The notes under the pieces: generated by a model
What the model was told of the DNA's origin: nothing
Databases searched by the model: none
The model's input: the letters and a program-made list of their open reading frames with translations, nothing else
Part shown: positions 1 through 51,742 of the stretch, one piece after another
Layout: each line of letters opens with the position of its first letter
How positions within the stretch are numbered: the stretch's first letter is position 1
From: Callorhinchus milii
Lineage: Eukaryota
Assembly (NCBI RefSeq): GCF_018977255.1
Contig: NW_024704748.1
Location: forward strand, 15,004,001-15,068,000
Reading direction: 5' to 3'
DNA length: 64,000 nt
Position numbers and translations under genes: made by a program

Positions 1-56
1 TTCCTGGAATTCCATCAATTTACAAAGGAGAAAAGGCTTTGGCATATAAAACTTAC

Positions 57-12163: not shown

Positions 12164-12455
12164 CTTGCGAGAATCAGCGAGAGACTGGCTCAGGGCTGAT
12201 TGACAGGCGTCCCGGCCAATCGGGGGGCTGCTCCTGCCCGTCGTCAGGCGCTGAGGGCGGGACTGACTAGTGATTGACAGCCCCTTTTGCCAATCCGCGG
12301 GCGGAGGTGGGCGCACGGGAGGATTGACAGGTGATTGACGTCCCGCTTCGCCAATCAAAAGAGGAAAGCGGATCTGGCCAGCACAATGCAAGAATAAATT
12401 GAACCAATCAGCCTGGTGTTCCCACTGCCAGTCAGTCATCCTGGGCCAATAGGAA
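12157..12455 (-). promoter_or_regulatory. CpG-island promoter/5' UTR of the hnRNP gene with PBX-PREP/MEIS decamers, five CCAAT boxes and a YY1-type motif over the ATG
   Basis: TGATTGACAG at 12197 and 12271, variants at 12321 and 12332; CCAAT at 12216, 12290, 12351, 12404, 12446; AAGATGGCGG on minus at 12157-12166. Confidence 0.75.
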
Positions 12456-12509
12456 TGTGCGGCCGCACTTTATCCGCTACAAACAGCCTCTCGGGTACCA
12501 ACCTTTACA

Positions 12510-16137: not shown

Positions 16138-19100
16138 TCATTTGCAGACCTGCTCCTTCAGGTGAAGCAGAAAATCATAGTATGACATGGTTGACTCATT
16201 GCGGTCCTCAACCATATGCTGAACAAACGTGTTCCTCGTAGTACTGTCATCCCTGCCGAATTAAGAAAGCAACCTTATTAGATCCTGGCTTAATGCAGCT
16301 ATAATCTATTATGGCATTTTAAATCCTGTTGTTACACTCAATCTGAAAGCCCTGATTTCAGAATTTATGACTGTAAGATACTGCCGCCTGCTGCCATGAC
16401 TGTTATTGCACACAATAAGAATCAAGTATGGAATGAAGCGAGGTAATTCAGCCCATCAAGTCATAAATAATCTACAACGAGCACAGCATGAAACTTTTCA
16501 GACAATTATTAACCTCAGATAAAACTAACAATTTAAAACTTCTTTTAAATTCAGTGATATTTCACCTTGTTTGGTATCAAAACTGTTTGGAAATTTCCAT
16601 TTCTCTCACCTCCACAGCAAGTGAGAACTTTATCCTCACCTCACACAAGCTTAGCTGCCAAAAGATAGAATCAGTTATCTATATGTAATTATTTAGTAAA
16701 TCATTGAGGGAGCTTGTTGGCAAACATATACTTAAGATTTTCTGCTGTTTTCTTAATAGGTACATTGAATTTGAGCCAAGGAGGATGTGTGACTGCTCCT
16801 TCTCATTCACTCCTGTCCTGTCTTCCTTTGTCTGATGGATGATCCAGAATTAGATCATATTAAAAGAAAATAGTAATGCTGCTCTTTGGTGTAGCCACGA
16901 GCAAGCAGTCTTGAGTAATAATAAAAAAATCCTTGTATTTGAAATATTGTAGTGCCTTATCAGTCAAAACATGTCAAAGTACTTCAGAGTTTTTTTGTAA
17001 TGTGTATTTGTAGATCAAAGATGCTGTCAATTTGTGCACAGCAAATGTGTCCCAAACAGTCATGATGTGACTGACCAATTTAACTAAAGGATTGACCAGG
17101 ATACTGAAGAAACTCCCTCTCTTTTCAAATAGTGTCACTGTACCTTTAATATCTACCCACAGATGATACCTTGATTTAACATCTCATGTTAAGGACGCCA
17201 CCTCTACTGCTTTCGAATGTGAGCCATAACTTACACTCGAATCAGTTGCAAATGTGGAACCAGCTGAGCCAGGCTGACACTCAAGTACTGTGGAAAGGAA
17301 CCTCTTGCAATCCCTCTCCAATCCACTCTGTAGTGCAAACACCAGTTAGAACTCAAGGATCCCAATCATAGGTAACTTGACCAACCCACGTGAGGATGTG
17401 AAGGTTGGTGGTTATTAATCAGTGGAGAATCAAAAACGTTCCCTTGAAAAGTTGATTAAGGACAATCAGAGAATCGCTCTTGATATGTAAACGTGTTTCC
17501 TCACTGTGAGACCAAGATTTCAGCATAGTGCAGGATATTTCTCCGGCTGTCTGAAAAAAAGTTTAAGTGATACTTTGTAAAAGTTTTCACTCACTTGATG
17601 ACGTAACATGGTGCATGAAAAAGTCTCCCATTTCTCATGGATGTTATTAATGTCTGAACAAGCTTTGAAGTGGGGTTCTGGAATTTAGGCAGTAATGTCT
17701 GAAATACAGCACAACAAAATAATCAATACTGTACAGCACTTAAGTTTTAGTTTGCACTTGTTTCCTTTCACTACGGAGCACAGAGAATTAGACAGACATC
17801 AGCAAACATATTGTATAAGCACAAATATCAATAAGCTGGGGTATGATGGGGTGAGAAAGAATATCCATATAATATGGCCATCTGACTAACGTATGTGAAA
17901 ATGACCTAAGCTGTATGAATCCCAGACATCCAATTCCTCAGTGATTTTGGTATGATGTAACTCTTTATGGAACATAACTTGCTTTTCCCTACTCATGATC
18001 TACCTTTTCAGTGTCCCCCAAGACCATGTACGTACTGCATATTGGAGGGCAGAACAAGTGAACTGCTCCCAGAGCAGTCTGTGCCACTCTTGGCCAATTG
18101 CTGAGCTGCACATCTTATGACCTGTCACCAAACAGACAAACCCTATCTTAATAACATAAAAAACAGCCCATAAATCACACTGAGATGAAAAAAAATGAAG
18201 AATTTAAATGGTTCTATTACTTGTTGGCACTGTGCTTCATTCTGACACTACTGTTGCAGCTGAGTTATGCTGTAACATCAGAAACACCAAGAATTTTATT
18301 CTTTAAAAGCCAATATCCAACTAATCCTTCCACAGCACACAGCTGAAAGTAAGCAATGGTCCAATCCATAGTCCACAGTAAATGTCTTGTGAGCAAATGG
18401 ACAGGTATCAATCTGATAGTCCTGTGTGATCAAAATTTAACACAGTTTTCTGGGTTTTAGAGAGCGAGAATTCTGCAGTGGATACAGATAGCAGATAAAC
18501 CACTTACCAGAGTAGGTGATAGAGAGGTATAACTCGACACTCCTAAAACCTTGTTCAAGAAGCTAGTGCTGCAATGCTTGCCAACCCAAATATACAAAAC
18601 CTAATGACAAGAACACAGAGCAGTCTGGTAACTGAAGCATTCCACCGAAGCAGCATTAGGGCATTTTTCAGAACTTGCCACAAATGGGACACCACTACTC
18701 ACTCACCAGCAATTATGTATGCCTGAATATGTAGCTGCTACCAGAATTTTGCTGGAATCTTGTACACTACACTCTCAGATAGGAGTTTTATCTGCTTTTT
18801 GTACTGTCATGTAATCCTAAATATCGTTAATGTCATATGTTCCATCATTTTAGATTTTAGGGCCAGCCCAATAAGAAAACATTAGCAATTAAAAATGTTA
18901 TGACATAGACACAAACAAAGAGACAGCTAATGGGTCTTTACCAGATTGTGCAATTCAGGTAAAGGGTAACGTTGGAAAAGCAAAAGCGATATTGAATCAG
19001 GCAGTTAGAAGAAAGCAGAAGATTCCAATACAAGTCCAAAAAAAGAGAGGGGAGAAATGTTATCTACAAGTTACCTTGACTCCACCTAGGTATAACTAAC

Positions 19101-22100
19101 AGTATTTTCTCTCAGTCAACATCTCTTAATAAGATCAATACATTAATTTGCAAGAAGAGTATATCTTTCAATGGGTTTCTAGAAACAATTTCTTTGCCAA
19201 GTTTCTTTGAACATTTATTAACACTTACATTGCCACAGTCCATTAGAAAGGCACCTTGAAGAGTAAGGTTATCTACAGAGAGCTGAATCAAGGCTGGTCT
19301 CTTCACTGTCTTATCTTCTGATTCCATGGAGGTCTGTTAGAGTAAAACAAAGAAAACAGGAGGGAAGCTTGTTTACCAATCTCACTATCATGTATCTGGG
19401 ATACCATTGAATGAACACCAATAGAAAAAAAACACTGAAAATCTATCATGCTACACATTAATTCCAGTGCTCACACCATACGTAACCTTGTCACTGGTGA
19501 AGGTATCAATTCGGAACAGGTCAGGGTACACCATCCGCATCACAAAAGTCAATGGCTGTGTCATCAGCTGGTACATAGTGAAAACACGCTCATCGAGGCT
19601 CAGAGCTACGTCTGTCTGAAAGGCCGACTGTAACATAAAATGTTTAATATCAGCAGTTGGTCCCATCAGTATCACACTATTAGGGGTTGTGCCTAAAATA
19701 CACAGTCGCCTATAGAAATGCACAGAAAACTCCGTGAAGCACTTTGAAACGTTTTGCCATGATAAAGTACTGCATCAAATTATTACTATCATCACACCTG
19801 CCCATTTTCTCAACAACATTGCATTGCACAGAGAGATGTAGAGAAAGGAAGTTAACAGAGATTGAAAGGATGCGCATAATACTCAAATTTCCCTCTCCTA
19901 GTTCATGACTTGTGAACTCGCAGAGCCCTACAACACACTGCTTTTGCAACAGTTCAAAGCATGGGGTCTGCGCAAGTGTTCAGACTTAAACATTGTGCAA
20001 TTTTATTTAGTGTTCCTAAAGGCTTAAAATAAATGCTGATTATCTAAACTTATGACCGCATTGCCATAGAGGAAAATCTGGTTGAAATCTGGAAGCAGTG
20101 TAGCAAGTCTGTACAAGTGATACAAGGAGACAGAAACATAGAACTATATCCTGCCGTGACCTTTTACCTGTTTGAGCAGGGCCAGTACATACAGCGGAAG
20201 TTGCTGTAAGCTATAAGGGACGATGAGGCCAAAATGGTGTGGACTGGAAGCTGAATTCTGGTAGGCAGTGAGAGCATCTGTCACAGCCTGCATCAGTTCT
20301 TCTCGGGCGTAAGCAAGGCAGGACCTCACTGCACGATCCACTGCTGTAAGAAACCACAAAACACACAGTCGCTACACTTTACAGTGTATCCTCTGAAGCG
20401 CTTTGAGACATGATAAGCCGCGGTATCAAATATAAGGATTATTATGATTATTATTATCAACCACACAGAGAAAGGAATACTTTGTAAAGAAACATGTAGA
20501 GAAGGACAAAACAGACCCTTTCATACATGTAACCCTTGGAATGTTGGCATCTCGCAAATTTTGAACTTCTTAAGTTTCAACTCCCCCTATTATTCTTAAC
20601 ATCCCTCCTTCTCATCCCTTCACCTAGAACCCCTATATTTAAATCCTCAAGCCTCCCAAAATTTCTAGAAAGCTGTGATTCCCAATCATAGTTATGCAGG
20701 CCGCCATCTTCTGTTGGCTAATTTTTTCACTTTCTAAACTTTTTTAATACTAAGGCAGATATTTTAAAACTGTGAACTCAAGTGAGGCTGAGATAAAGAA
20801 ATGGCCCCTGAAGTCTTGGAATCACTGAGGCATATTCTTGTAACTGTTTTCCGTGATTTTTCTGAAGAGTTGTTAACAAATATCAATTTGATATGGAAAG
20901 CATATGATCTAAGATCCTTCCAAATGGTCTTTGACAAAGCTCCATGTGAAATACTCCTTTACAAACTGATCACACTCGATATCAAAGATTAGACATAAAA
21001 TGTGACTTAGTAACTGTCTGAAAGGAAGGAAGCAGAAGATAGTCCTTAGTGGACCTAGGTCAAAATGGGGAGAGATATTAAATGTTTTACCTCAGGAATC
21101 TGTTCAGACATCCTTCCGGAGCCTTGTATACATCAATGGCCTAGCTTCACAGACTCAGTACAAGGTAGTAAAAGTGAAGGGTGCTATATAAAGGCAAGTT
21201 GTCCTTGTTGTTATAGTTAAATATGTAGGTAACACAAATTTAGGGAGTTAGGGAGTTTTGGTCAATTCTGTGCAAACCCACTGTACCTCCTTAATTCCCT
21301 GATACTAGATGAGAGTTGGAAGTTGCACCTGATCCACCCAACTATGTATCACCACTTTGCTCCACCACTAAGCAATATCACCATCATGCTTCATGTATGT
21401 TTGTGTGAAATTATTATTCGTTTCACCAGTTTGTAGATTATCTTACCTTTTTTAGAAAGAATTCCCACGGTAGCAAGTACATCAACTCCTGCATAAACCT
21501 CACTCGGGGAACTTACGACAGGTAAGCAATATGTGTGGATCCGAACCCGCCGCTCACCTACAAATGCAGCACTGAGTAAGGCCTGTAGTAACTTACAAAG
21601 TCAGCTCACAAACAACAGTGAAAATGGTTTGCAGCTACAGCATGCATGTTGGAGCAGCAGTTCACAGAACAGCTTTGCGGAGCCCTGGGAATAAAGTACC
21701 TGCCCTCTCACTCAGGGAGGGAGGCAACAAAAATAAAATATTACCTAACAAAGGGGAATACATTTACAATGTTAAGCAGGAAATGGGTGGATTATTCAGC
21801 ACCTTGACTGCCGCTAAAAAGCAGTATATCGTGGATGGCTTACCATCATGGGGGCAGGAAAAGCAGACACAGACTGAAGTAAATGTAAGGGAATAAAGCT
21901 AGTTCCAAAAGCATTCTCATTGAGAATGCGGAGAAGCTGGCAGAGTGGGTCGTACCTTGGCTGGAAGTGTAGATTAGAGATAACTGGAACACCACAAATG
22001 TGCTCTCACTCAGAGATCCATCAATCAACATCTGAACGGCAAATTCTGTGTGAGGACAGATAGTGGGCAGGCATAGCAGCTCAGTCGTCTGCAGGAAAGA

Positions 22101-25100
22101 ATTGCCATAAAATGTGTGCAGAAGGAGACCTGAATTTCATGGAGTTAAGACAAAGGTTACAATGAAGCATGCTTTCTTATAAACAGTCATAAGCTTAAGG
22201 ACTTGTCATAAATGTCCACACCCTGCTCCACCATATACTTTGATTATACACAGCTTATTCTGGATCAGTCATCCCACCTGTTTGGGTGCAAAGAAAATCC
22301 CTTCACCTTGTGTGTATCGTATCCTGAGCAGCGCCTCAAAGCCAACAGAACGGGTCAAATAGTACTGGAATTCTTCCTGAAACTTCTCAACCAAGAAATA
22401 GGTGTGTATATGATGGAGTCCTGGATAATAGTACACACAGCCACACGTGTACCTGGAAATACAAGCTGCAGAAACACATTGTAATCAAGAATTAAAGACG
22501 TCCACAGTAAGGAGTCATGGTCTGAAACTCAGAAGGGAATGGCTGAATAGCTAGTTCAGAATTAACTGCTTTACATAGAAAATAATTAACAATGCAGAAC
22601 AGTTTGCTCACAGAGTTGGTAGAGACAGGTGACACGGGCAATTTCAAGAGGGAATTGGATTCATTTTTGATGGCAAAATTGGTTGGAGCAACAGTGTGTG
22701 AGCTGGGAAGAAATGTCATTTGAAAATGACCTGGGGAGTTTCTAGTCCTATGTACTTATACACATTGTATAGTACGGTCACTAAACCGGGTTGTCTAAAC
22801 CAAAAAGTAACAATGTGTTTACAAGCTACATTCTTACAGAGATCTCCTTACAATCAATCTTTTTCAATTATCCCAACCCAACAGAGTTTCACTGCATGAC
22901 ATTGCCCCCAAAAAATACATTTGTGACAACTGTACTAATTTTTTTATCTCAACACCGTAAGTAGCATTTACCTATGGAAGCAAGGTCAGCATACTGCTCG
23001 CTGAGCAAGAACAAGTCCACACAGGTCTGCTGGCCACAGAACTCCAATGCAAGCACCTTGTAGAAGTCGATGGCTGGTCCCAATTGCTCACTTCCCTGAG
23101 AGAAGATAAGAGAAAAAAAAGGCTAGTAAATCTGAGCACTTTGAACTCAGCGCCCTTTTTAATCCTATTCAGGTGAACTTTGTTAATAGAAAAAAACATT
23201 AAATTGTAGGGTTGGAGGGGAGGAGAAAAAATTCTTCCAAGTAATTAATTGTTATTATTATTATTAAGAACAAAAGAATTGCTAGATGAAAGAAGACCAA
23301 GATCCATCCAGTTTGCCTTCCACCATCCTGGTAGTGGCATGCACATGTTATGTCCCAAACTGTATACTGTATCCCAAGATATTATTATTATTGAAACATG
23401 GCTTACATACCAGGTTACTTCCTCCAGGGCTTTCTCGTGGCTGCAGGGAGCCACAGCCTATGTTGGGTAACTGGGTCAAAAACACAGACACACGACCACC
23501 ACTGTAAGCCAGGAGTTTCTGAGCAGCCTGCAATGCAGGCCCCAAAGCGCACTGTGCCTGCTGAGTCTCTCGGAACATATCCGGCAATTCTTCAAGCAGA
23601 GAAACAAGCAGCTATTACAAAGAAAAGTTAGTGCAGGAATCAGAAAAAGGAAGGTAATGGTCAAACATTTAACAACACAGGAGCTATGTTTCATTTATTC
23701 GTAGGCTGTTTCAGAAACTAGTGGAGGCTTACAAGAAACAACATATCAACTTAATGAATACGGTTTTAAACACCAAGGTATGTAGAAAATATTGGTGAAT
23801 TTACAACTCTCGAGGATTAACTTAGATAATTAGTTTTCCAACCCAAAAAAAAATCCATATGAGACTTGGTTAAGCTGGCAAGAAGCACAAGGGTGTGTAA
23901 AATATCAATATCAATTGATATGTTACTATTATTTGTGGCTTAATGTTGAAGACAGGCCAAATATCAATTGAAAGGAACTGCTTAACTCATTTTTTAAAAA
24001 CTCTGGAGCCAGCTGATAGAAAACAATAAGATTGAATCCAATGAAATGCAAGGCAGTGATTAGCTATTATGCTTCATCAAACAGATTCACAAGGAATAAG
24101 TAAGGGCATGCAATTACCTCCCTGCTTTGGTGAAGATTCACTAGCAACTTCTCTTCATTCGGCACAAAGACATCTAGAACAAGAAAGACATACACAACAT
24201 CAATTCTTTTGAAGTACGGAGGCAATTGCCTGTGACTGCTTCCATCTGTGTGGAGGTTCATTGCCATTAAAGATATGGCTGACGTTTGGAAAATGTATAC
24301 CACAATGAAACTTATAATAAACTCAAATGTACGGAAAACATCCAACCTAATTTGTGTGTAAAGTGACTTACAGTGAACCTAAGTGTGATTTCCCATTGTT
24401 TGCCTGTAACTAGCAATAGAATGCTTTTAATATTCATTTAAACAATGACCAGAAAACAAACTAATCTTCGCCTGCAAAGCAACTGCTCAGAGACTCAGTA
24501 GACATATAGTGGTAACTTCAGTCAATGCAATGAAACATGCACAGCCATTTAGTGAGAGGGAAAACACAGTGCAGAATTCAAACCTCCACAGCCATCTGCA
24601 AATACATCAAATGCCAAACAAAGTGCTGAACTGTCCTGCATGCCACGTTAATACTGCAGCTCAGCTAGCAACCATGTTCAGAGCTGGGTTTTCTCAGTGC
24701 CTCTGGAGGAAGCACTGTCAGAACAAACAAGTTGAACATAACTTCAGGGCTGCTAGCTGTTATTTTCTGAGTGGTAAATGTATGAATACAGGAAAGTGTG
24801 GCAGGTTTGTTTTCCATTACTGGCCTGGAACAGAAGTTCCCCACACAGCAGCTGATGTAATATTTTGTGTCTTTGGAATCGACTACACACTGCTATAATC
24901 AGAAGTGCCACATCTTGGAGATTATGGGCTTTGTCTTTCTAATGAGGCACAAATATGCTCAGTGTCAGGTACACTGTTTGTATCCTTCTGTGGTTTGCAG
25001 TAGTGATTGACACCAGTTGTAATGGCTTACTACATCCATGGAATACAGTGAAAATGTATTAATAAAATTATTGATAAATCAAATCAGAATTAACAAAACT

Positions 25101-28100
25101 GTAAGTACAGAGCAATTACTAACTCATAAATGTTTAAATGTTAATTATTTAGGGCGAGCTAAAATATATTCAATCCCTCGTTTGAATTTGACTCATCTTT
25201 CCAATTAATACAGAGACATTATCTTAGTCCTGGAGTCCTGTAGCTCAGTGGTTAGAGCACTCGCTTTGTAAGCGAGAGACCTGAATTCAATTCCAGGCAG
25301 GGCGAAACCTTGGGCAAGTTTCCTTACTCCACACGCCTAATAATAATCCCTCCAAAACCAAAAACAATAATTAAATTGGTCATTTTCAATCTACGACTGT
25401 TTGTGGGACATTGCTGTGCGCAATTGGCTGCCGCGTTCGCCCACAAATATACAGTCAATTCACTTTACAGTGTGTTCTGTGAAGCGCTTTGGGACGTCCT
25501 CCCGACGTGAAAAGCGCTATATCAAATGCAAGGATTATTATTATTATTACAATCAGGTAACCATTTAGAATATAAACGCCACAATACCCTCATCAAGCAA
25601 GTATTTTGTACATATAATTATCACGCACGTATGCTGATATACACATAGATATCCTATACGTATACAGACACATCACATACAAATATATTCCAACATACTC
25701 ATTCAGACTCACATTCACATACATCAAAAGTCCCTATCTACTAACCGTAAGGAATTTAGCAAGTCTTCTGCAAAATGGTAGTTCACACATCTTCCATCAA
25801 ATATAACTCATCATATCCACAACAATTTGAGGTTATTTTGTATCAATAATGACAGACAGATGTTTTTACTGAATACTAATATGCAATCAATGTTTTACAG
25901 TCTATGTAATCTGTTCATTATAAAGATTTTTATGCAAAAATTCTGATTTTAATTATATGCCACAGAATCAAATGTCTGTATTCTAACACTGTCAAAGTGT
26001 CAAATAGCGACTTACCATCAATCTCGGACATGACCATCATACGCGGTCGGGAGAGACTCCTATGCAAATTGTAGAAGTTAACTGTGCTGTCAAAAGTGAT
26101 GAATCCAATGCGAGTTTCTGAATCTTCCAGTAACCTAGGTAACAAAGACAGGAGGCAATGTATGAATGGAATTATCTTTAAATTAGGATCTATAGTCATT
26201 TCTCGTCCATTGCTTGCTTGATCAGTAAGACTGCTCTGGGGAGGAATGATCTTGTCGGAACTCATCAGAAGCAAGTGAACCAAAGTAAAGGAACTTCACT
26301 ATAAAAAGGTTTTTCAACCCATCAAGACTGCCACTTCCACAAACGCCTGCATGAATGATTCTATTATGGATTCACACTCCTTCCCAATGATTTATTCTCC
26401 TGAGTCAATGTTCTGCATAAATTAGTGTCACTCAGTGAGGTTCTGCCAAGTCTTACGCTATGTTTTGCTGGAGGGCCATTTGCTGTAATACTCTAACATG
26501 CTGCAGCTCGAAGATCTGCGGTCAAAATTTCACCAACACATTGAAATTTCCAACAGTCCCTCATGGCAGCCAGATACGTCCACCATTAGAAGATGAGAAA
26601 ACAGTACACCCTCAAAGCCCACGATAGCTTTTAAATTCAAACGTTACAGCCTTAGGCATTAACAAATGTTTTGTTCTAAATTGAAAACAGCAGCATTTAC
26701 ATCTCCCTGATAATTTCTGGGCACATGAGCTCTGGTACAATGACAACTTGTAGTCCTTGCCAACAGATGAAACAGAAGCTCTGAAAGTAAACAAATGCAA
26801 GTATTTTTGCACTCTGATATCTCATTAATCAAAAAGAATCAACTTTATTTCCTTCAAGTTTTTGGGCTATTCCCAGAAATACCTTCAGACCAAAAACCAT
26901 AGTGAGATAGAGCTGCGTTAAGAGCTTTGCCTATAGCCACTGAATGCCTCACCTATCTATGTTGTCCAGCAGGATTTGGCAAACAATCTGCAGGTAGCCA
27001 GTTTCCACTGCTCTGTAACTGACGTCAAACATAAACAAGTATGTTGCAGGTTGAGGGGGACGAGCCTGAGGAGCCATAAAGAGATAATAAAGTGCAATCA
27101 GCAAACTTCATCCATCGGCCTGCTAATCAGTTACACGGTACATGTATGTTACTTCACAGTAATTGACTTGTATTGGGTACACCTCTACTGTGCCTTACCG
27201 TACAGTGTTGGTTGCTGACTCACTTCAACAGAGATTCTGTCAGTATCAACCCACTGTGCCACAATGTGCAACTTACACAAAGACACTGAGCAGAGGCTGG
27301 GCACTATGTCACAGCAACAGAAAATCTCTCCACATTTGTGGAGAGTCATTTGTGCCCTCATTTGATCTGCGATGTATGATGTGGTATTAAGTAAAACTTA
27401 GAGAGGGAAGAAAAGGTAAAATAACTTTCTAGTTTTAACAAAAGAGAGATACTTTTATCTGACCCAAGTGGAAGGGAAATGTTCAAGTACAATGGAAGAG
27501 GTAGCTATAACTGGTTCTGTACAGTGGGATGGTAGCTGTTCCCATTACAGCTGACCTGTAAACATTTTTGGGGGGTCAGCCAGGTGTTTGACATATGCAG
27601 AACCCATCACTATGCTTAAGAGTATCCAAACCAAGCTGAGATTTCCATGCGTCCTTCATACACATGGGAAATTCCAGAGATAGATTGTTGGAATGGAATG
27701 CGCACTCTCTCCCTGGAGGGATGCATCCTACTAACGTAATTCCAGAAGGTATTACGCCTTCCGATCTGTACAGAGTGATTATCAGTGGGTGGGGACATCC
27801 CCCCGACGTGAAAGACGCTCTATAATTTTAATTTTGTTGTTGTTGTTGTTTGTTGTTGTTGTATTTGGCACAGGTTGGCATGAGCCAAGGCTTGGGGACC
27901 TCAGGATGTGCATTGGGGTAACTGCTGGAGTCTAACAAACTACAACTACATAGCTTACAATGAAGGAAACTGCACAATTGGACACAACTGGACATGGTAC
28001 ATACAGATGGTCTGTACAGAGTGATGGTGAATGTACAAGTCGTACATGTGAATCAGATGGAAGAGGAAGTTCCTGCAACAGGTGATCTGTAAAGTGGAGG

Positions 28101-29978: not shown

Positions 29979-32900
29979 ACAGAATTCATACTACCAGACA
30001 ACTTTAAAAGTGTAGACAACTTTAAAATAAGAGGGATTTGTCTGAAAAACAAAGATAACTTATATTTCCAATCATACTTTGGCAGGAAACTTCAGTCTAC
30101 TGTGGTATTTCATATTTAAAGCCAATTATTTTTTCTTCTTCAAGTCTCTCAGCTCTATATTCCAGGCACCATCCCTCAGATGAGGGGAGGCAAACATCTG
30201 CCAATGTCCATCTGTAACTGGCTACCAAAAGATACGATGGTAAAGCAGCAATAATGTTAAGGGTAGCTTGATCTATCCTTAACAGCACAATCAAGGTCAA
30301 GAACTTCCCAATTGGAGTATTGCTTACACAATCCTGCTCAAAATCCCTTAAGTTCTCAGATTCCAACCAATTCTTCCATTTCCGTACAATGATTGTTCTC
30401 TTGACTCTATCCTCCCCCCTCCTTGCATAGTCAGAGCCTGAAAACAAACATTGCCCAACTGAGATGGAGTCTGCACAGTCTAAGTCTGGGGAGCCTTATT
30501 GGTAGACTTTATCTCTAGTAAATGGAGTTGAACAATACCATCTAAAAGATAAACTGGAAGGGTGAACAAGATGCACATTGGCTACCACTTTATGCAGCAG
30601 AGCAACATCACACATATAAGCTAGTTACCTTTCTACCTCTACTGCATCATAACTACTATGTACAGTGCACACAATTACAATTACAAGATATACTATTATT
30701 ATTGTTATTATTACATACTCCGAGGATCCTGAAGAAATTCCAAAGTGTCAACGGAGATAAAGTTTAAAAAAAAACAAGTGCCATATTCATAAAAATATTT
30801 TAACCTATTTCACATGTAACACTTCAACAGTTATTCCTAAATGCAATATCGATATTTTTTTAAATACTAAAGAAGTCCTAGGTTTGCAGCCAGCAGGATA
30901 AGGGTAAGTGATTTAATGAGTTTCACTGACATATGTGAAGGAGACAGACACACATGGAGATCATACTAGCTAGTGAAAACATGGCATCTTTCTCATTGGA
31001 AAATCATATGATCAATTATCAAAACATATTGCCTACCCATTCAATTCTTGCACCATAATGGTTGAATATATATTGAATATATATATATTGCAATATATGC
31101 ATATATTTGGACTGTACTGATACACTTTCCAGAATGATTATAACAGCCTGAGATTAGCGTTGATCCCAGACAACAGTGACATTTGATACTCCACTCTCTA
31201 TACAAACCGCAGATGGCTGAACTTTAATTACCACAGGACAGTATAATTTATTCAGGTGATAAACGATATCAACTCCCATGTAGTAGTAATGTATTCTAAT
31301 CACCTCTGTTGGCATAGCTACAGTATTTCAGCCACAGCAATACACACAGATACTCTTTGAGACACTGTGGTTCCACTCCACACAAAATCATGAAGGTCTG
31401 CCAGATAACCAATGTCTGATCTGTCACTTAATAGGGTACCTGACACTGAGCATTTTTGTGTCTCATTAGAAAGACAAAGCCCACAAACGATATGCTACAA
31501 ACATTGTCAGAATTTGAACATGGGAAATTAAGGTGCTGCAATACAACTACAAGTATTAGGTGATGAATGTGATATTGCAATCTATAATATAACATTATCC
31601 TCAAACAACTTTAGAAAGCCTCTACATTAAAGAAACAGCTCAGGTCAATCTCTATTTAAAAGAGACTTACAGCACTATTACCAGAGGTCGAAAGGTAATT
31701 ACAACACATCATTTCCATAATGAATTGAGATGTGGGAAAGAAAATAAAGTCACTTACAGAACATCTAGTATGTGGCAATTGATGCTTTGAAACAGTAAGA
31801 GGGCAAAAGATAAGAGACAGCATGAACTGAGAGAAGGACAGACCAACTCAGAGATTTATTGGACAGATTAGAATTAAACACTGGATTAGACATTTATTTC
31901 AGTAGAAGGAAAGCCTTTAGTCAGCAAGACAAACCAAACTGGTAAATATATTTCAAGCAATAAATACTCACATTAAAGTTTCAGTCACAATATACTTGAG
32001 ATTACGATGTTCATTTTGGTCCATCTAGTCTATCCAGCAGATTCAGTCACTATTAATTTTAGCTACACATGTTAAACTGATTCAGATACAATATAGCTGT
32101 AATCCCTATTCTGAAAAATCTCCTTGATGGACTGATAGAGAATTGAACACCTGCGTAACCTGATTACAGTGCTGTCACCACAGCAACATGTTCTACAACC
32201 AACCAGAGCTCAGGTAGTAAACACTTCTCTACTGATTCCTACATTACAGTTCCTACATTACAGTTCCTACCAGTCAGGTATCCCTTCTTTAATGTATTCG
32301 GATTGTTATAAAGACTGTAATATGTGATTGCAATACCAGAAGAGACGGACATTCAGCGCATTGACCCTGTCCCATCATTTTATTGTAAATAATAATAATA
32401 ATCCTTGCATTTGATGTAGCATCTTTCCCATCAAGAGGTCGACTCAAAGAGCTTCACAGGATTTACTGTACACTGCAATAATCGTGTAGTGTAGGAGAAT
32501 ATAGCTGACATTAGAACATGGCAGATCTTTTAATTCCATTTCCCCACCTTTTCTTCATACCCTTCGTAACACAGTACCATTACTGCCAAGTATATATCTA
32601 TTTCACATCCCATTTGATTGTGCCTCCAGAATCTTTAGGGGGGATTGTGACTCAACCTACCTGCCACTCCATAATGCAATGTTCCACAGCAATCAATTTA
32701 TAAAAACTTAAAACATAAGTAGCTGTTTGCTATTTGTCTGACAGGTAAATTGTAATACATCTGAATACATGATCGTATTCAATATTTCTAACCAGTTTCC
32801 ATTGACCTTTCTGTTTATACTATTTGTATATATAATGATGTTGTATCTTGTAGTATACTGTAGTAGTAATGTGATATGGCCTTACCGTGGATCAAAGAGA

Positions 32901-33529
32901 TGCAATGCCTTCACCAAGCAGAAAAAAACAAATGCTCAGTGGTTGTCACGAGCTTCTGCTAATTGGTTCAACGATAGCAATACAATTGCTAGGAGTACAT
33001 TTGTTGTCAAACATAGGATTTTCTCTATTGTATGGTAAAAGGAGGTTTAATTGGAAGCAGATCTAGGTTTGCCCACAAATGGAATGAAATTAGCTGAGAA
33101 ACTTTTATCTGAAGGCTGATATGGAAGAAAAATGCAGTTCTTGGATCAAATACAATGAAAATTCATAATTTTTCCAGCTATTAAACAGCAGAATGATTAT
33201 GCAATTATCATATGCACCTTTTTTGACAGCTGGTGCACTCTGCATTAGTTTTTGAGCTACTCTCTAAAAATCAATTCAATCTGAGCAATTGTGTGTATGT
33301 TTCTATCAGTTAATGTGATCGTGTGTCTCTCTACCAATTTTTGTGTATCTGTTTGTCAGTATATTTTCTCTCACTCTCTGAAAGTGTTTGTGTGTGTCCC
33401 TCTCTGTCTGTCTGTTACTGTAAGCGCTCTGAGACGCTACACTGCATGGAGGGCGCTATATACGTGCCAGCTGTTGTGTATTTCTCTCTTCCCCCTGGTT
33501 CTGTCTGTTTATTTCTCTTCCCTCTGTGT

Positions 33530-34075
33530 ACTTATACACTGTATTTCTCGTGTGTGTATATATTTACTGTATGTGTGTATATACTGTGTGTATATATACT
33601 GTTTATGTGTGTATATACTGTGTATATATATGTATACTGTATGTGTGTGTATATATTGTATGTGTGAGTATGCTGTATGTATATGTATGTGTGTATATAC
33701 TGTATGTGGGTAGTTACTNNNNNNNNNNNNNNNNNNNNNNNNNNNNNNNNNNNNNNNNNNNNNNNNNNNNNNNNNNNNNNNNNNNNNNNNNNNNNNNNNN
33801 NNNNNNNNNNNNNNNNNNNNNNNNNNNNNNNNNNNNNNNNNNNNNNNNNNNNNNNNNNNNNNNNNNNNNNNNNNNNNNNNNNNNNNNNNNNNNNNNNNNN
33901 NNNNNNNNNNNNNNNNNNNNNNNNNNNNNNNNNNNNNNNNNNNNNNNNNNNNNNNNNNNNNNNNNNNNNNNNNNNNNNNNNNNNNNNNNNNNNNNNNNNN
34001 NNNNNNNNNNNNGTACGTGTATATGTGGTTGTGTACGTGTATATGTGTGTGTATATATGTCTACACTGTGTGTGT
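33530..34075. repeat. (TG/TA)n microsatellite region containing assembly gap 33719-34012
   Basis: Visible dinucleotide-rich sequence on both sides of an N run. Confidence 0.9.
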
Positions 34076-34099
34076 AGTTAGTACAACCCTCTGTTTGAC

Positions 34100-34279
34100 T
34101 CCCTGTCTCTGTCACTTGACCCCGACCCGGAAGTGATGCTGTGCTGAGGCCGGAAACATTCCCGTTGGTTCCTGCGCTGCCGGGAGTCGGTGTCGGAGAG
34201 AGACCGCTCGGAGCCGCGAGACAGAGAGAGAGAGACGGAGAGAGAGAGAGAGAGAGAAAAAAAAGAGAAAGAGGATCAG
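34100..34279 (+). promoter_or_regulatory. SAR1A CpG promoter and probable non-coding exon 1; candidate bidirectional promoter with the SEC24-like gene
   Basis: ETS/GABP-type CCGGAAGTG at 34127-34135 and CCGGAAAC at about 34150; CpG-rich; donor CAG|GTCAGA after 34279. Confidence 0.6.
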
Positions 34280-34699
34280 GTCAGAGCACAGCACAGCCCC
34301 CCCCCCCCCCCCACCCACACCACCGGCTGTCAGACACCCCGAGTGCGCTCAGCTGGTGTGAGGGGTGTGAGGGGTGTGAGGGGGGGGGTCAGGCCCCACT
34401 GAGCGACACGTAACCGAGAAAGAGCCATGACGGGGGGGGGGGAGGGGAGAGGAAAGGAGGACACTGGAGAGGGAGGGAATGATTGAGCGTGTGGGGGGAG
34501 GGATGGAGGGAGGGAGGGGGTGAAGAGGAGAGACAGGAAGTGAAATGGGGGGGAGGGGGGGGAGAAAGAGTAGAGGGGGAAAAAAAGTAAGAGGTTGGGA
34601 GGGAGAAAGAGGAGGAGGAGGAGGAGGTTAGGAAGCAGAGGGGAAGTTGGTGGTTTGGGAGGAACACCAGATTTCTTCACCGAAGAGATCTGCGAAAAT

Positions 34700-35065
34700 A
34701 TGGAATAATAATCTTTGCCAAAGTGCTTCATACGAATTACTGTAAAGTATAGTGACTATACGTGTGTGGCAAATTGTGCACAGCAATGTCCCCCACACAC
34801 ACACAGCCAAGAACTGCACAGCCAATGTTTTATCTGGGGAATTGTCAGCCAGGACACCAGGAGAAACTCCTTTTTTTTGGAATAGCGCCATGGGATCTTT
34901 AACGTCCCCTTAAACAAGCAAACGCCTGAAGGATGACACTGATTATGCAGAGTTATCCCAGCACTGTATTGAAGTGTCAGCTCACACCACAAGTCAAAAT
35001 CCCGACGTGGCACTTTGAACACAACCGTCTAACTCAGAGATGAAAGTGTTGCCAGCTGAGCAGGC
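34700..35065 (-). mobile_element. Old Deu-domain SINE relic
   Basis: GCCAGGACACCAGGAGAAACTCC...AATAGCGCCATGGGATCTTTAACGTCC is the reverse complement of the Deu domain as recalled. Confidence 0.7.
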
Positions 35066-35347
35066 TGACTTGTACTGCCTTAAAGCTCCAGAGACAGAAT
35101 GAATTAGGATTGTTAAACTGGATCTAAATAGATACTTGGGGAAAAATAGCTAAAATGAAAAGGGGAGGTCATAGGATTAAAAGACATGTTGCTCATTTGT
35201 AGTGCAGAGCATTGGCTCTATTTAGGTTCCTTAAGGTTAGCTTCAGATATGTTGCAGTATCTGTAGCTTTTTAAGTAAATTCCATTGCTGTGTAACCAAG
35301 TAGTGATCCAGATTGTGTTTACATTTGTAGGTGTGTCCGATTCAGAA

Positions 35348-38300
35348 ATGGAGACCTTTTTCGATTGGATTTTTGGTAATATTACCAGTATGCTGCAATT
35401 CCTAGGTAAATGGGTTAGTCTTTTATTTCCTCTCCCTTTCTCCTTTAAACAAGGAATTTCCAGACTTCTAACAGCTTTTCTGATATCTATCCTACTTGTT
35501 TGCCTGATCGCAATTTAGATGTGATTACCCAAAAATGTGCTCTTAGTAGTAGGTTTATTGCACCATTTACCAGCCCACTGACTCAGTTTGTCCATCTCTG
35601 ATTTGTACTTTATTTTATTTTCATCTTTATTCAGCTCAGTAAATTACCTTTGGGATCCCCAAGACTATTTGTGCATTACCTCATGAATTATTGAGAAGAT
35701 CTTATAGATGCTCAGTGCCTCCTTTCTCCTTTTGTGCTGGTTTAACCCCCAGCTGAGAAAGCAGTCAGGCAATCCCGTTCTATAAAATACAACTCAAAAT
35801 ACTGCAGGTGCTGGAAATCTGAAAACAAAAACAGAAGTCGCTGGGAACACTCATCAGGTCAGGCAGCATCTATGGAAAAATGAAAGTGAGTCAACGTTTC
35901 GGGTCCACGACCCTTCATAAGAACTTCGTCAGTCCAGTTCTGTAACTGTATGGGGGACATGAGATCAGCCCAGGTTGTCTCACTTGCTTCTTTTCCCCAT
36001 TGTTGTCAAAGTCTCCTTCCCTTTTAGCCCAAAGAAGATCAAAATGTTCCTAAATTGAGAGTCGCTATAATAAACATTTCCAGTCCAAATCGGTATCCGT
36101 GCACTGGACTTACTACGGGTTTTTGTGTACAAAGCATTAGTAATGTTTGGAAAATTTGCATGCTGGTCAAAGCAAGAAATATTTTCTTTCAAAACTACAC
36201 TAATTTTCTTTGTCTAGGTTTATGTAAGAAGTCAGGAAAGTTGGTTTTCTTGGGTTTGGATAATGCTGGCAAGACAACCCTACTGCACATGTTGAAAGAT
36301 GACAGACTGGGACAGCATGTTCCTACATTACACCCGAGTAAGTATTTCCATCAATTTAGCATACTATTCCTCAGTGAACTGACTTTTCACAAAAGGCTGA
36401 GAATTCATCTTTTGGTTCATCATTTTAACTGGGGTAGTGATTTATAATGTTGACTGGCCATATTGTTCCTTAGATGGTGTCCAGTAGATAAATTGTTTAG
36501 TCTGAATATCAATAGACATCAGTCACAGAGCTCTTATAAGAAGTGCTACCTGCATGAATAGTCATTAAAGAATAGATCCAAACTTGAGTAATCACGCAAG
36601 CTGACAGGGTAGTAAACTAATTGAGGGATCTAGATGACCGTAATCCATTCACATTTCTCACTATTTATGCAATCTGATCTGCTAAATTAGATTACAGTCT
36701 TGTAATAATTCCCAGGAGTAATTTGATTTATTTAGTGGATGCACCATGGGTCTATTTTACCTAGAGTATACTGAGTTGTTGATTCCAAGTGATTGACAAC
36801 TAACTCCTATATTTCTGCAGTTTTCATCCCACTTGCAGCCACCAATTTTTGCCTTCCAGAATTAAGCAAACAAATCCCTTTATTTCCTTACAAAAGTATG
36901 TTCTAAGCATTGCATTCTTCAGTAAGAACAGACACAACGAGAAAAACTTGTGTACTTATGTACTGTCAATCAATGGTAGCTTTTTCTGGCCTTTTTCATG
37001 ATTTTTGTTCTTACTGTCTCCTAAGAGTTGTTTTGCTGCTAATTCTGCCCATAACTACAAACCCTGACGTGTGTAGATGGTTGTTTTATTTGTGGCTGTT
37101 GGAGCTTTGCAGGTTTTGGGAGCTCCATGGATCTGATTCATTCTCCTGATTAGGTCCTGTTTCTTTACACAGCATCGGAGGAACTGACCATTGCAGGAAT
37201 GACGTTTACCACGTTTGATCTTGGAGGTCATGCACAAGGTAAAATTCTCACAAGAGATGTTTTGTTACCTTTTAAAGCAGGATAAGCTGAATTTATATCA
37301 ACAGTCTTCATTCAGTACAGTATTTGAATTAAATTAGTTAAAGCTATGCTCCCTGTTTATACGTTGTTTTCTCTTACCGAGTCTCGCCATCAATAGCAGG
37401 TAGTGATGAAACCAATTACCTAGGATGCACAAAGTATCTGTAGACTGTCTCAACAGTGGATCCGAGAGAACTGGGTAGTGTTCAGTCAAGTGCTTCGGGA
37501 CACTAACCTGTGTGAAGTGCGCTATATAAATGCCAATTGTTGTTATTTGGGCTCTGGTTTTAAGAACTTTCATTTTGTTCATCTCCATTGGCAGAGATAA
37601 ATCAGTTAACCAGCCCAGTATTTGGCTTATAAGGACTTGATATGGTGACTGTAGCATGGCAGGCATTGTAGATTCACATCAGTAGCAGAGTAGTGGGCTC
37701 TTGGGGAACTGCCTTGTAAAGGGAAGAGGCACTCACAGTTGTAGCATTGTGACTCCGGATTTTCAAGATACACTCTATTTTCTTGATTAACAACAACCAT
37801 ATGAGTGCAGGACAACAACATGAGAAAATGAGGCAAGAGGAACAGAGGAGGAAAGAATCTTTGAATGTAAAATTAAACTTTGTCATTAATAATTATATAG
37901 GCTTTCAACTGTTAAATCTTTTCACTCTCATTCAAATAAATAAAAAAATGGACTATTCTCTGGAAAGGAGTTCTATTTAAACTCTCCTGCTTATTTGCAG
38001 CCCGACGAGTTTGGAAAAATTATCTCCCTGCCATTAATGGAATTGTTTTCTTGGTTGACTGCGCAGACCATTCACGGCTTGCTGAATCTAAGGTTGAGCT
38101 TGATGTAAGTCAAACAACATTAAGGTGAAGTTTTTGGGAGGTGTGTGGGAAAGGATTCTTGAATTCTAGAAATTGGGTTTGTATGATGTAACTCATTAAA
38201 GCAATGGTTGAACAGGTTAACTTTTCTGAATTACAAAATTATTTAAACGTATTCCCATAATTTAGCTGTAATAAATGCATGTGATGTTTCTACTGATTTG

Positions 38301-39924
38301 TTGGGGGGATTTTGTGTTGAAACTGCCTCAATTGTACCTTCACTTAATGCAAACATTGTGGTCAAATAACAGCTGGTGATTCAGCACTACTTGACCAGCA
38401 AACCTTATTTCAGTCGTAGGCTGTATGCAATGTAGTCAAATGTGCAACATAATCTAAAACTTTCCCTTCCCTTCCAGGCATTGATGACAGACGAAACAAT
38501 ATGTAATGTTCCAATTCTTATCCTTGGAAATAAAATTGATCGACCAGAAGCCATCAGTGAGGAAAAGCTAAGGGAAATCTTCGGTCTGTATGGACAGTCC
38601 ACAGGAAAGGTAAAATATGGTTTGGGTTTCCAGAGAGAACCTTTTTTCTTTGAGACCATGACCATTTGATTAGATGCCCAAAATGCTTGGGAAGCTCTAC
38701 TCATGTTACTCTGGGCATGATGCAGAAAAATAATTGCAGTCCTCAAAGGATTAATTAAACGTGTGGTTGGGTCACTTTCCCTGGAGTGGTTTCATTTTGC
38801 CTTACAAGTTGCAGTGATTTACAGTGACAGCTGACCATGTGCTGAGCTAGCACAGACAGCTGCTTGCCCTGTTGTTTGTGCCAGCGTTAGTGATAAGGGA
38901 ATTTTCCTTCCAACTGTTTTATAAATCGGACCTACAACCCTGTTAAGGTTATCTTTTTCTTTTTATATGAAATGCTGTTTCTTGTACACCTGGAGATTTA
39001 CAAGTCCATGCTGAGTGCCTTTTGCTTTTTAAATTGACCCCTGGTGAATACAATGAACAGGTTAAAATTATCAAAACTAAATAAGAGCAGGACAGTTTTG
39101 TATTTCAACCAATTCCTCTTTCAGTTATGTTTGCAGCCAAAATACAAAGGTATCTTAAGTTAGGAAAAAGGAAAGCATTAGGTCTTCATGCACCATTCCC
39201 TTAGTTGAGGGGGCATCAATTGATATACTCCTGTGTGCTCCGAGATGCTGTCTGTCGTGAACGGTGCTATATAAGTGCTAGTTGTTATTGCCTCTGACTG
39301 GTAGAACTTATTTTCAGCCACTCTCAAAAATGTGCATATGAGCAATCAGCTGACTCTTCCTGTGATTTTTTTCCTCTCTCTGTGGGTATCTTACCTCTCC
39401 TGTTTAATACCAGCAAAATCATAAGCTAACTGCTTGTGCTTTAATGAGCTCAAACCAGTGTCGTGTTCCATAGCATGTGTGCTGGTACACTTTGTACTGC
39501 CAAAAACTATTGCGCATTTGCTGGTACTAGTCATGACTCTCATGGACCATTAAATCTTGGTTCTAAGCAAGGAGTTGCTTTTTAATAATCAAGTCTACTT
39601 TGTCAACTGTCTTTATTATACACTCGGAATCTGACTCGGAATATATGAAATTAATGCAAGGAATCCTGCTTGCAAATAACATTTTAGACCTTGTTATGTT
39701 ATTATGGCATATATCAAGAAATATTCATCAAGGAAATGTATTTTGTTTTCACAAATCTTCTCCCCCTTAAAAAAACTGTATTAATTTCACACATTGATCT
39801 GTTCTAGGGTAATGTACCCCTCAAGGAGCTGAACACTCGGCCATTGGAGGTGTTTATGTGCAGTGTGCTAAAGCGTCAAGGTTATGGAGAAGGATTTCGC
39901 TGGCTTGCACAGTACATCGACTGA
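35348..39924 (+). CDS. SAR1A: Small COPII GTPase SAR1A, 198 aa
   Basis: Exons 35348-35405, 36218-36337 (GLDNAGKTT), 37173-37238 (DLGGH), 38001-38104, 38478-38609 (NKID), 39808-39924 (WLAQYID*), total 597 nt. KKSGK, DHSRL and ESKVEL plus adjacency to TYSND1 favour SAR1A over SAR1B. Confidence 0.95.
35795..35925 (-). mobile_element. Short repeat of probable Penelope-like origin carrying a degenerate hammerhead motif
   Basis: Minus strand: CTTATGA-A-GGGTC-GTG-GACCC-GAAA-CGTTGAC followed by AGATGCTGCCTGACCTGATGAGT...CCAGC. Confidence 0.55.
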
Positions 39925-51080: not shown

Positions 51081-51576
51081 TCAGCACTGCTCGATGACCA
51101 GCTCTGTGGGGCTGTACAGTTTCCTCTTAATGATCCTGAATCCCGGGCTCAGGCGCAGTGCTCGCCTGAAGCCCGGAGTGAAGGACGGGCCCGAGGTGAA
51201 GAGGTCCTGGATCTTGGGCCAGAGCCCAGCCTCGAGCCTCAGCACCAGGGTCAGCTCGAAGGTGGGCGACAGGCTGCCGTCCACGGCGAACCGGTCCACG
51301 TTCCTGAACAGCTTGTCGTCCTCCACGTTCAGGTCGATGACGGCCCCCCGCAGGCCGCACGGCTCGCTGGACGCCAACCGGAGCAGGTCCTCGGCCACCC
51401 GGGCCGTGAGCTGGTCGGGGATGAGCAGCTTGAAGCAGCGCAGGGCGCCGCGCTTCGCCTCCATCAGGCTCTGCTCGATCAGCTGCAGCACGTCGGCGCA
51501 CAGCGGCTCCTCGAACGGGTCGTCCACGATCGAGTCCTGGTCACTGCACGAGTCCAGGCTCTCATAGTCTTCACCC

Positions 51577-51615
<39 letters not shown>

Positions 51616-51742
51616 AGTATATATATATATAGAGAGAGAGAGAGAGCATTTAATTTACAGAGTTTCTTGTGCACAACGAGGCGTACGTAGGTGGGGAGGG
51701 AGGGAGGGGATGGGATGGGGAGACTGGGGTTGAGGTTTCAAA

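Follow-up and report, generated by a model that had tools for sequence, protein, structure and literature searches.

Introduction

SEC24 proteins are subunits of coat protein complex II, or COPII for short, and vertebrates are described as having four SEC24 paralogs in the accessible text of a cell-biology preprint. The human regions 4q25, 5q35 and 10q22 share blocks of paralogy, each with a member of the Sec24 family, according to the accessible part of a membrane-collagen paper (PMC4678570). In a published table for human 5q31.1, SAR1B, SEC24A and H2AFY are placed within 1 Mb. The elephant shark, Callorhinchus milii, has a SEC24 gene, here named SEC24 X, that lies beside a SAR1 gene in a stretch of 64,000 nucleotides (the window; RefSeq assembly GCF_018977255.1, contig NW_024704748.1, positions 15,004,001 to 15,068,000 of the forward strand). 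An earlier note, made from the letters of this stretch, had read the gene as a third A/B-class SEC24 that preserves an ancestral SEC24-SAR1 pair. The analysis reported here finds that SEC24 X is very probably a third A/B-class SEC24 of jawed vertebrates, transcribed, placed beside SAR1, left by the early genome duplications and serving as a COPII adaptor.

No description of a fifth vertebrate SEC24, or of a separate ancient lineage corresponding to X, was found in the literature searched, where supplements of genome papers might mention the gene; the name 'Sec24E' occurs, in the literature searched, in a moss preprint only. What is new is the recognition of X as a separate ancient SEC24 lineage, the gene models themselves being already public under '-like' names. 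NCBI labels models of X either 'Sec24A-like' or 'Sec24B-like'.

Gene structure and transcripts of SEC24 X

The minus strand carries, from 29978 to 16138, a SEC24 gene of 18 coding exons (Table 1). Its product corresponds to an NCBI automatic model, 'protein transport protein Sec24B-like [Callorhinchus milii]' (P0164, XP_007897927.2, 763 amino acids), which matches the translated minus-strand frames in 18 consecutive pieces, all of them exact, and which stands in for the spliced product in all protein comparisons below. The 17 introns are all GT-AG, each with a single solution that keeps the frame, and the coding length of 2292 nucleotides is made up of 763 codons and the TGA stop. The intact 18-exon gene of the earlier note is borne out by this match. 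The protein length of 769 amino acids given there is not: the current model has 763 residues, and an older NCBI model of the same gene (P0505, XP_007897927.1) has 779.

Transcripts were followed on positions 27500-33400 in contigs from three runs of one study, presumed to be RNA, and from one DNA run. Contig X6 record 18 (770 nucleotides) consists of the segments 29959-29818, 29197-29094, 28958-28833 and 28216-28106, together with 287 nucleotides that fall outside the region checked. Contig X7 record 26 has the joint between exon 3 and exon 2 again, and then the segment 32937-32886 fused to exon 2 (at 29197), so that exon 1 is skipped. The DNA run X1 is unbroken across the introns that the RNA contigs splice out. 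The 5,901 bases checked contain three coding junctions, all of which are seen spliced; of the 17 junctions that the earlier note had proposed to follow in RNA, these three are the ones that join exons 1-4. SEC24 X in C. milii is an intact, spliced and transcribed gene.

The 5' end of the gene has more than one form. An acceptor AG at 29992-29991 would allow exon 1 to open at 29990, in frame, and the first 12 residues of P0505 map to 30113-30078 before the model resumes at 29990. The upstream exon, which extends to at least 33063, is 5' untranslated, because it has stops in all three frames and a donor GT at 32885-32884. With at least two 5' exons present, the start codon of SEC24 X is unsettled.

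Two parts of the region checked, 27500-28090 and 32228-32621, are very abundant interspersed repeats with a summed contig depth from thousands to more than 100,000 in every run, and they caused numerous spurious joints in the placement of the reads. An open-frame motif of the same repeat family recurs many times in the window, on both strands.

Class assignment and taxonomic distribution

With the crystallised cores of SEC24A and SEC24B, P0164 has an end-to-end alignment at about 50% identity. Over the whole protein it scores 912 bits against human SEC24B and 887 against human SEC24A, compared with 350 for SEC24C, 331 for yeast Sec24 and 319 for SEC24D. The classes separate in the same way with one exon alone (A 64.9, B 63.1, C 20 and D 17 bits). 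As judged from these alignments, SEC24 X is an A/B-class and not a C/D-class protein.

When the exon at 23351-23611 (minus strand) was searched against 1.84 billion representative proteins, the best matches were short SEC24-like proteins, P0001 (728 amino acids), P0002 (642) and P0025 (813). P0002 is from the coelacanth; P0025 is from the reedfish, and a look-up of its cluster gave a Polypterus member as well. The lungfish Protopterus annectens contributes P0030, an X-type fragment of 389 amino acids. Seven of the 150 representatives listed have an X row as their best BLAST match, four of which are named and come from a shark, the coelacanth, a bichir and the lungfish. P0051, P0100 and P0114 were considered as members of X and dropped as short, unnamed or ambiguous fragments. 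The bichir and lungfish rows of X came only from this search of representative proteins.

Among the 120 matches listed for P0001, 17 are X-type, with 59-100% identity, and all are from 13 species of cartilaginous fishes that span sharks, rays and the chimaera; the other 103 are ordinary SEC24A or SEC24B with at most 50% identity. Among the 120 matches listed for the coelacanth X protein, 12 are X, all from the coelacanth or cartilaginous fishes, with no further X-bearing taxa scoring above the level of A and B.

SEC24 X occurs side by side with the ordinary members of its class. A search with a sturgeon SEC24A led to the C. milii protein P0490 ('Sec24A-like protein', 1139 amino acids) and to Erpetoichthys SEC24A (P0387), and also listed the SEC24A proteins of gar, bowfin and numerous teleosts. 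XP_042195801.1, named 'Sec24A [Callorhinchus milii]' by NCBI, belongs to the cluster of the C. milii SEC24A (P0490/P0499) and is on a contig of 19,629,525 bases; SEC24 X is on a contig of 28,267,339. A separate SEC24A locus, which the earlier note had suggested looking for, is therefore present in the same genome. SEC24A and X are found together in C. milii and in both Polypterus and Erpetoichthys, and SEC24B and X in Pristiophorus and Latimeria. Of the 'fifth SEC24' claimed for this lineage, the coexistence of A and X in C. milii is established, while the count of five is an extrapolation for the genome.

Phylogenetic position

The maximum-likelihood (ML) tree rests on an alignment of 37 rows by 827 columns, with LG+C20+F+G4 as the model, and its support values are given as ultrafast bootstrap / SH-aLRT (Shimodaira-Hasegawa-like approximate likelihood-ratio test). 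It omits the isoforms P0152, P0156-P0158 and P0166, P0001 (an isoform minus one exon), P0160 (which has a doubtful N-terminal extension), P0165 (a partial Pristis sequence) and P0002 (a partial coelacanth sequence, replaced by P0273). The tapeworm and choanoflagellate outgroups were dropped, having met as long branches in an earlier tree.

X forms a clade of 12 rows with full support (100/100) on a stem of 0.59. Clade A (11 rows, 100/100) has the C. milii SEC24A, P0490, as sister to the SEC24A of bony vertebrates and includes the bichir SEC24A, and clade B (10 rows, 99/95) includes skate and sawshark. A and B join each other (21 rows, 96/92), and X joins A+B to the exclusion of the lamprey (33 rows, 82/84). 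The wasp, beetle and anemone rows fall outside X, A and B. P0164 is in clade X, outside both the SEC24A and the SEC24B clades. Within X, the chimaera is the first branch of the cartilaginous fishes (100/100), rays and sharks coming next, with the coelacanth and bichirs on the opposite side (89/84); this branching is that of the species tree. In a separate tree the lungfish P0030 is placed in the bony half of X (8-row X set, 100*) with an end branch of 1.75. P0030 has an odd, repetitive N-terminus and a truncated C-terminus, and it may be degraded, pseudogenic or poorly predicted. Should it be real, the decay of X extends to the closest living relatives of tetrapods.

Cartilaginous as well as bony vertebrates are found in each of X, A and B, so that all three predate the crown of jawed vertebrates. 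That X is not an ortholog of A or of B is secure, and its duplication is placed by the tree before the jawed-vertebrate crown and after the split from invertebrates, with the order relative to the lamprey weak (82/84). A position of X as sister to A+B is the favoured reading of the tree, and an insecure one. Three other identities were rejected: SEC24A, because X is outside the A clade and C. milii has its own SEC24A on another contig; SEC24B, because the B clade (99/95) is without any X row; and a duplicate confined to cartilaginous fishes, because the coelacanth, two bichirs and the lungfish fragment are in X. The ML tree, the check proposed in the earlier note, thus shows P0164 to be neither the sole SEC24A or SEC24B ortholog of its genome nor a recent lineage-specific duplicate, and with clade X standing apart from A and B at 100/100, the third A/B-class SEC24 has been found as claimed.

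Domain architecture and cargo-binding sites

P0164 has the five Sec24 domains in the order of the family, all above their Pfam cut-offs: zf-Sec23_Sec24 (39.2 bits, cut-off 25), Sec23_trunk (238.2), Sec23_BS (68.6), Sec23_helical (72.3) and Gelsolin (35.4). The zinc cysteines are conserved, with four of four kept in each of the 14 X rows.

A first distinctive feature of X is its N-terminal end. Only 20 residues stand ahead of the first conserved core motif in P0164, 36 in P0505 and about 65-100 in the other X orthologs, while the core of C. milii SEC24A begins at residue 470. SEC24 X thus appears to be without the long, disordered, Pro/Gln-rich N-terminal region, even though in C. milii itself the N-terminus is unsettled by the alternative 5' exons and an assembly gap. 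In most X orthologs the protein opens with a conserved basic start peptide, some 20 residues long, after which come 40-60 residues of poor conservation. This peptide is seen in P0151, P0153, P0154, P0159, P0161-P0163 and P0025, from cartilaginous fishes and the reedfish. P0160, a protein of 1122 amino acids from Heterodontus francisci, is X-type with about 300 extra N-terminal residues and has the conserved start peptide inside; its extension is probably a prediction running in from upstream sequence.

In the window, the best match to the start peptide is a stretch of nine residues at 33232-33206 (minus strand) with an E-value of 20, flanked by stops and located in the RNA contig 33107-33338; it was not counted. 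This stretch, 33206-33232, is too weak a match to count, but it could be what remains of the first coding exon of the ancestral gene. The start peptide of C. milii X may be in the gap at 33719-34012, or lost.

The cargo-binding sites are described in the residue numbering of human SEC24A, transferred through the alignment to chain 2nup_B. This numbering depends on the chain starting at residue 341, which is presumed here. The accessible part of a SEC24A study reports mutations of Y437, Y496, R750 and R752 in the 'B-site' and of R541 and K813 in the 'C-site' (bioRxiv 10.1101/2022.01.31.478454). At the B-site positions C. milii X has Y, H, R and R, so that three of the four are kept. Across X, Y437 is conserved in 14 of 14 rows, Y496 in 11 of 14, R750 in 12 of 13 and R752 in 10 of 13. 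Seven shark rows and two of the three ray rows have all four residues, the coelacanth has three and the bichirs two; one shark isoform is without the R750 and R752 columns, and Mobula has a Lys at R750. The C site of SEC24A is taken to be the Sec22b site. Its two positions are occupied by Glu and Gln in C. milii X, and across the X rows R541 is kept in 7 of 14 and K813 in 2 of 14. All six B- and C-site positions are unchanged in every filled cell of SEC24A, SEC24B and the lamprey. C. milii alone has Y496H and R541E. The Sec22-type site therefore seems to be altered throughout X, and the B site largely kept in sharks.

Evolution within X is also fast. The branch path from coelacanth to chimaera is about 1.17 in X, compared with about 0.37 from coelacanth to sawshark in B, a rate approximately three times higher.

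The SAR1 gene, the intergenic region and neighbouring genes

SEC24 X and SAR1 are on opposite strands with their 5' ends facing each other, which is the part of the head-to-head arrangement in the earlier note that stands directly; the adjacency itself depends on an assembly join over a gap. The gap touches no coding exon of the SEC24 X or the SAR1 model, and the reading frame of both is therefore unaffected. TG/TA-rich tandem repeats flank it on either side (33551-33718 and 34030-34064), as if it had been placed inside one repeat array. To the left of the gap (32800-33718) the observed/expected ratio of CpG is 0.31, compared with the higher value of the CpG-rich stretch to its right. This stretch is likely to be the promoter of SAR1 or a divergent promoter shared by the two genes.

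All five SAR1 introns, read by eye, are GT-AG. SAR1 exons 4-6 align to residues 82-198 of the solved SAR1A and SAR1B chains. Against the solved human chains of SAR1A and SAR1B, respectively, exon 4 scores 63.7 and 60.1 bits, exon 5 scores 73.0 and 75.1, and exon 6 scores 69.1 and 68.4. The sequence of SAR1 leaves A versus B open, and it is the gene order, not the residues, that points to SAR1A. The gene order agrees with what the earlier note had described, TYSND1 and DDIT4 both following SAR1. The TYSND1-like gene begins about 3.6 kb past the SAR1 stop and is the immediate neighbour of SAR1, as in mammals; in addition to its Trypsin_2 matches, the Atlas clusters closest to it, at a score of 0.98, bear the name 'peroxisomal leader peptide-processing protease'. 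The DDIT4 exon is presumably from DDIT4 rather than DDIT4L. A second assembly gap (53051-53185), with GC-rich low-complexity flanks, is just upstream of the 5' region of DDIT4.

The earlier note had also stated that mammalian SAR1A has no A/B-class SEC24 beside it. This is in line with the accessible rows of a horse association table, where the genes at one marker are AIFM2, TYSND1, SAR1A, NPFFR1, LRRC20, PPA1 and MACROH2A2, without a SEC24.

An hnRNP gene follows directly past the 3' end of SEC24 X; its product has a CBFNT domain, two RRMs and a tail rich in Gly and Tyr. Among solved chains, the RRM1 exon matches hnRNP D-like best (138 bits), then D0 (106.7) and A/B (103.5). The human members of the hnRNP A/B-D family are presumed to be on chromosomes 4 and 5, so that the gene in the window, too, may be an ancient paralog retained on the block of the 10q22 type.

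Table 1. Features of the SEC24 X-SAR1 region, in positions of the window
Feature	Position	Strand	Remarks
hnRNP A/B-D-DL-type gene	1..12469 (runs off window)	-	CBFNT 11849-12469; RRM_1 6414-6692, 2546-2791
SEC24 X coding part	16138..29990	-	18 exons, 763 amino acids; exact P0164 match
SEC24 X exons 1-5	29978(ATG)-29818, 29197-29095, 28959-28833, 28216-28107, 27065-26953	-
SEC24 X exons 6-10	26134-26016, 24173-24118, 23611-23411, 23095-22972, 22465-22307	-
SEC24 X exons 11-15	22129-21956, 21557-21447, 20343-20168, 19627-19487, 19333-19229	-
SEC24 X exons 16-18	18600-18508, 17698-17595, 16252-16138	-	TGA 16140-16138
SEC24 X exons 1-4 joined in RNA contigs	28107..29959	-	X6 record 18; X7 record 26
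SEC24 X, possible alternative first coding exon	30078..30431	-	P0505 start and RNA contig X6 record 20 (30102-30431)
SEC24 X, upstream non-coding 5' exon	32886..33063	-	X7 record 26; X5 record 15 and X6 record 21 cover 32894-33063
Assembly gap (N run)	33719..34012		between 5' ends of SEC24 X and SAR1
CpG-rich stretch	34013..34450		GC 0.59; CpG observed/expected 0.60; 22 CpG
SAR1 gene (SAR1A by neighbourhood)	35348..39924	+	6 coding exons, 597 nucleotides, 198 amino acids
SAR1 exons	35348-35405, 36218-36337, 37173-37238, 38001-38104, 38478-38609, 39808-39924	+	stop 39922-39924
TYSND1-like gene	43505..48605	+	Pfam Trypsin_2 in pieces 43457-44782 and 47358-47606; approximate exon ends
DDIT4 (REDD1) last coding exon	51084..51737	-	163.3 bits to chain 7mop_B 'DNA damage-inducible transcript 4 protein'

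Proposed function and origin

SEC24 X would be a core-only SEC24, consisting of zinc finger, trunk, beta-sandwich, helical and gelsolin domains. Its membership of the family and its end-to-end alignment with solved SEC23-SEC24 chains suggest that it pairs with SEC23. By the same family membership, SAR1-GTP would recruit it to exit sites of the endoplasmic reticulum, where it would be involved in cargo selection for COPII vesicles. Compared with A and B, it probably has a narrowed or shifted range of cargo, because the tail is absent, the C-site is changed and evolution is about three times faster.

The locus would have originated from a SEC24-SAR1 pair older than the vertebrate genome duplications and copied with its chromosome when these took place. 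X would then be the copy left on the paralogous region of the SAR1A/10q22 type, lost later in tetrapods and most ray-finned fishes. This arrangement presumes that SEC24B is on human chromosome 4, that SEC24A is on 5q31 and head-to-head with SAR1B, and that SAR1, TYSND1 and DDIT4 are genes of the 10q22 type. The earlier note had likewise set human SEC24A head-to-head with SAR1B; the accessible 5q31.1 rows have the two genes within 1 Mb, and their orientation is an assumption here too. Its ohnolog reading, with X as a product of the 2R genome duplications, is sustained in so far as the tree places the duplication before the crown and the published account, in its accessible part, gives paralogy among chromosomes 4, 5 and 10. 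Whole-genome duplication as the source of X can be inferred from the depth of the tree together with that published 4q25/5q35/10q22 paralogy.

A more specific picture goes further. SEC24 X could be a specialised core-only COPII adaptor without the regulatory tail or a Sec22 site and with a cargo set of its own, co-transcribed with SAR1A from a divergent promoter used by both genes, the pair being a physically linked coat module that predates the duplications. This is possible but on the doubtful side. If it is true, early jawed vertebrates ran a variant of the COPII coat that was given up by land vertebrates and most ray-finned fishes.

Assessment of the proposed origin and of the alternatives

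A number of observations weigh against an intact COPII adaptor left by genome duplication beside SAR1A. In the approximately unbiased (AU) test, joining X to A lowers the log-likelihood by 7.2 units and is rejected only marginally (p 0.043), and joining X to B lowers it by 6.8 units and is unrejected (p 0.060). The long stem of X invites long-branch effects. The tree has one lamprey row and no rows of SEC24C/D, amphioxus or tunicates, and with one lamprey and no invertebrate chordates X is therefore not timed relative to the first and second rounds of duplication. X was not seen in tetrapods, gar, sturgeon or teleosts among the top 120 and top 150 matches listed, a result of protein searches and not of genome searches. 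The 5'-to-5' adjacency of SEC24 X and SAR1 rests on the assembly join across an unbridged gap. SAR1 itself sums to 205.8 bits against SAR1A and 203.6 against SAR1B over the three exons, with A higher in two of three; the 'SAR1A-type residues' of the earlier note thus lean the right way, and weakly. Among the 335 columns that are invariant in A and B, X keeps 54-71% (C. milii 71%), compared with 89% in the lamprey and 78% in the wasp, a share that would go with relaxed constraint or, just as well, with a new function. The conserved start peptide was not found in the window with tblastn searches of six N-terminal pieces or with three fuzzy patterns in six frames, and the N-terminus of C. milii X is therefore unsettled. 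The features of the tail, the sites and the rate would fit a shifted or narrowed cargo range, and relaxed constraint equally.

These points bear differently on the other explanations. X could have arisen by a small-scale duplication of SEC24 alone, or of the SEC24-SAR1 pair, on the jawed-vertebrate stem or earlier, its place next to SAR1A being secondary. The tree dates X to before the jawed-vertebrate crown, and the weak lamprey position (82/84) leaves room for such an event. However, SAR1, DDIT4 and hnRNP A/B-D genes share the block of X and have human relatives on chromosomes 4, 5 and 10, published as paralogous in the account cited above, and an A/B-class SEC24 beside SAR1 on two paralogous blocks is explained most simply by duplication of the whole block. 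A small-scale origin is accordingly held to be improbable. The human placements of DDIT4L and of the hnRNP genes that enter this argument are presumed. It could also be that X in C. milii is a slowly decaying or idle copy, transcribed yet no working coat subunit. Its fast evolution (paths of about 1.17 in X and 0.37 in B), the 71% of invariant columns kept, Y496H and R541E in C. milii alone, the degraded look of the lungfish copy and the missing start peptide would all be expected of such a gene. An idle copy would not be expected to have an open frame of 763 codons with 17 of 17 canonical introns and spliced RNA, or five domains above the Pfam cut-offs, and full-length orthologs with the four zinc ligands are found in other cartilaginous fishes, the coelacanth and bichirs. 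These lineages have been separated by hundreds of millions of years, and decay of X in C. milii seems very unlikely.

Least credible is that the locus is simply the SEC24A-SAR1B pair of the elephant shark with a fast-evolving SEC24A, or else a copy of A or B that arose recently in cartilaginous fishes, for which there is hardly any chance. The closeness of human SEC24A to SAR1B in the accessible 5q31.1 rows, the ambiguous sequence of SAR1 and the names 'Sec24A-like' and 'Sec24B-like' given to X models at NCBI could be read in this way, but the 1139-residue SEC24A of C. milii is on another contig and takes the basal position in the A clade (100/100), X is present in the coelacanth, bichirs and lungfish, and TYSND1 and DDIT4 lie beyond SAR1. 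The adjacent gene was not found to be SAR1B, the outcome that the earlier note had named as contrary to its reading: its sequence is ambiguous and its neighbours are of the SAR1A type. The earlier observation is confirmed, and the earlier interpretation is supported as largely right, since the findings that would speak against it were looked for and none was obtained. A third A/B-class SEC24, left beside SAR1 by the genome duplications, is accordingly kept as the preferred reading.

Comparison with known SEC24 proteins and with other ancient paralogs

SEC24 X shares with SEC24A and SEC24B the five-domain core, with end-to-end alignment to the human cores at 887-912 bits, the zinc ligands and, in C. 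milii, three of the four B-site residues. It lies beside a SAR1 gene, as SEC24A lies near SAR1B in the accessible 5q31.1 rows. It differs from both in forming its own clade, in the shortness of the part ahead of the core (20-36 residues in C. milii and about 65-100 in other species, as against several hundred), in the change of both C-site residues in C. milii, in keeping 54-71% of the invariant columns, in evolving about three times faster and in not being seen in tetrapods among the matches listed. With SEC24C and SEC24D it has in common the family and the domain order, while its scores of 350 and 319 bits to these proteins are far from the approximately 900 bits to A and B. SEC24C is presumed to be on human 10q22, the region orthologous to the block of SEC24 X.

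The comparison of X with A and B offers a natural experiment on the roles of the disordered tail and of the Sec22 site. The data show that at least three A/B-class SEC24 genes were present in the jawed-vertebrate ancestor, with X intact in cartilaginous fishes, the coelacanth and bichirs and its expression seen in C. milii, so that early jawed vertebrates would have had one COPII coat subunit beyond the textbook list. SEC24 X also matters for how models now called 'Sec24A-like' and 'Sec24B-like' are named by orthology in at least 17 species, gives the paralogy of chromosomes 4, 5 and 10 a further marker, and raises the question of whether the head-to-head SAR1-SEC24 pair is a conserved regulatory unit.

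SEC24 X can be placed among the 'cryptic' ancient vertebrate paralogs, such as Pdx2 and Bmp16, which according to the accessible parts of two papers were kept in cartilaginous fishes and the coelacanth and lost in mammals (PMC2944030, PMC6395752). It is thus another member of a class with many precedents and no new kind of machine. Like those genes, it is retained in slowly evolving lineages and lost elsewhere. Unlike Pdx2 and Bmp16, which are developmental regulators, SEC24 X would be a structural part of the cell's basic machinery of secretion.

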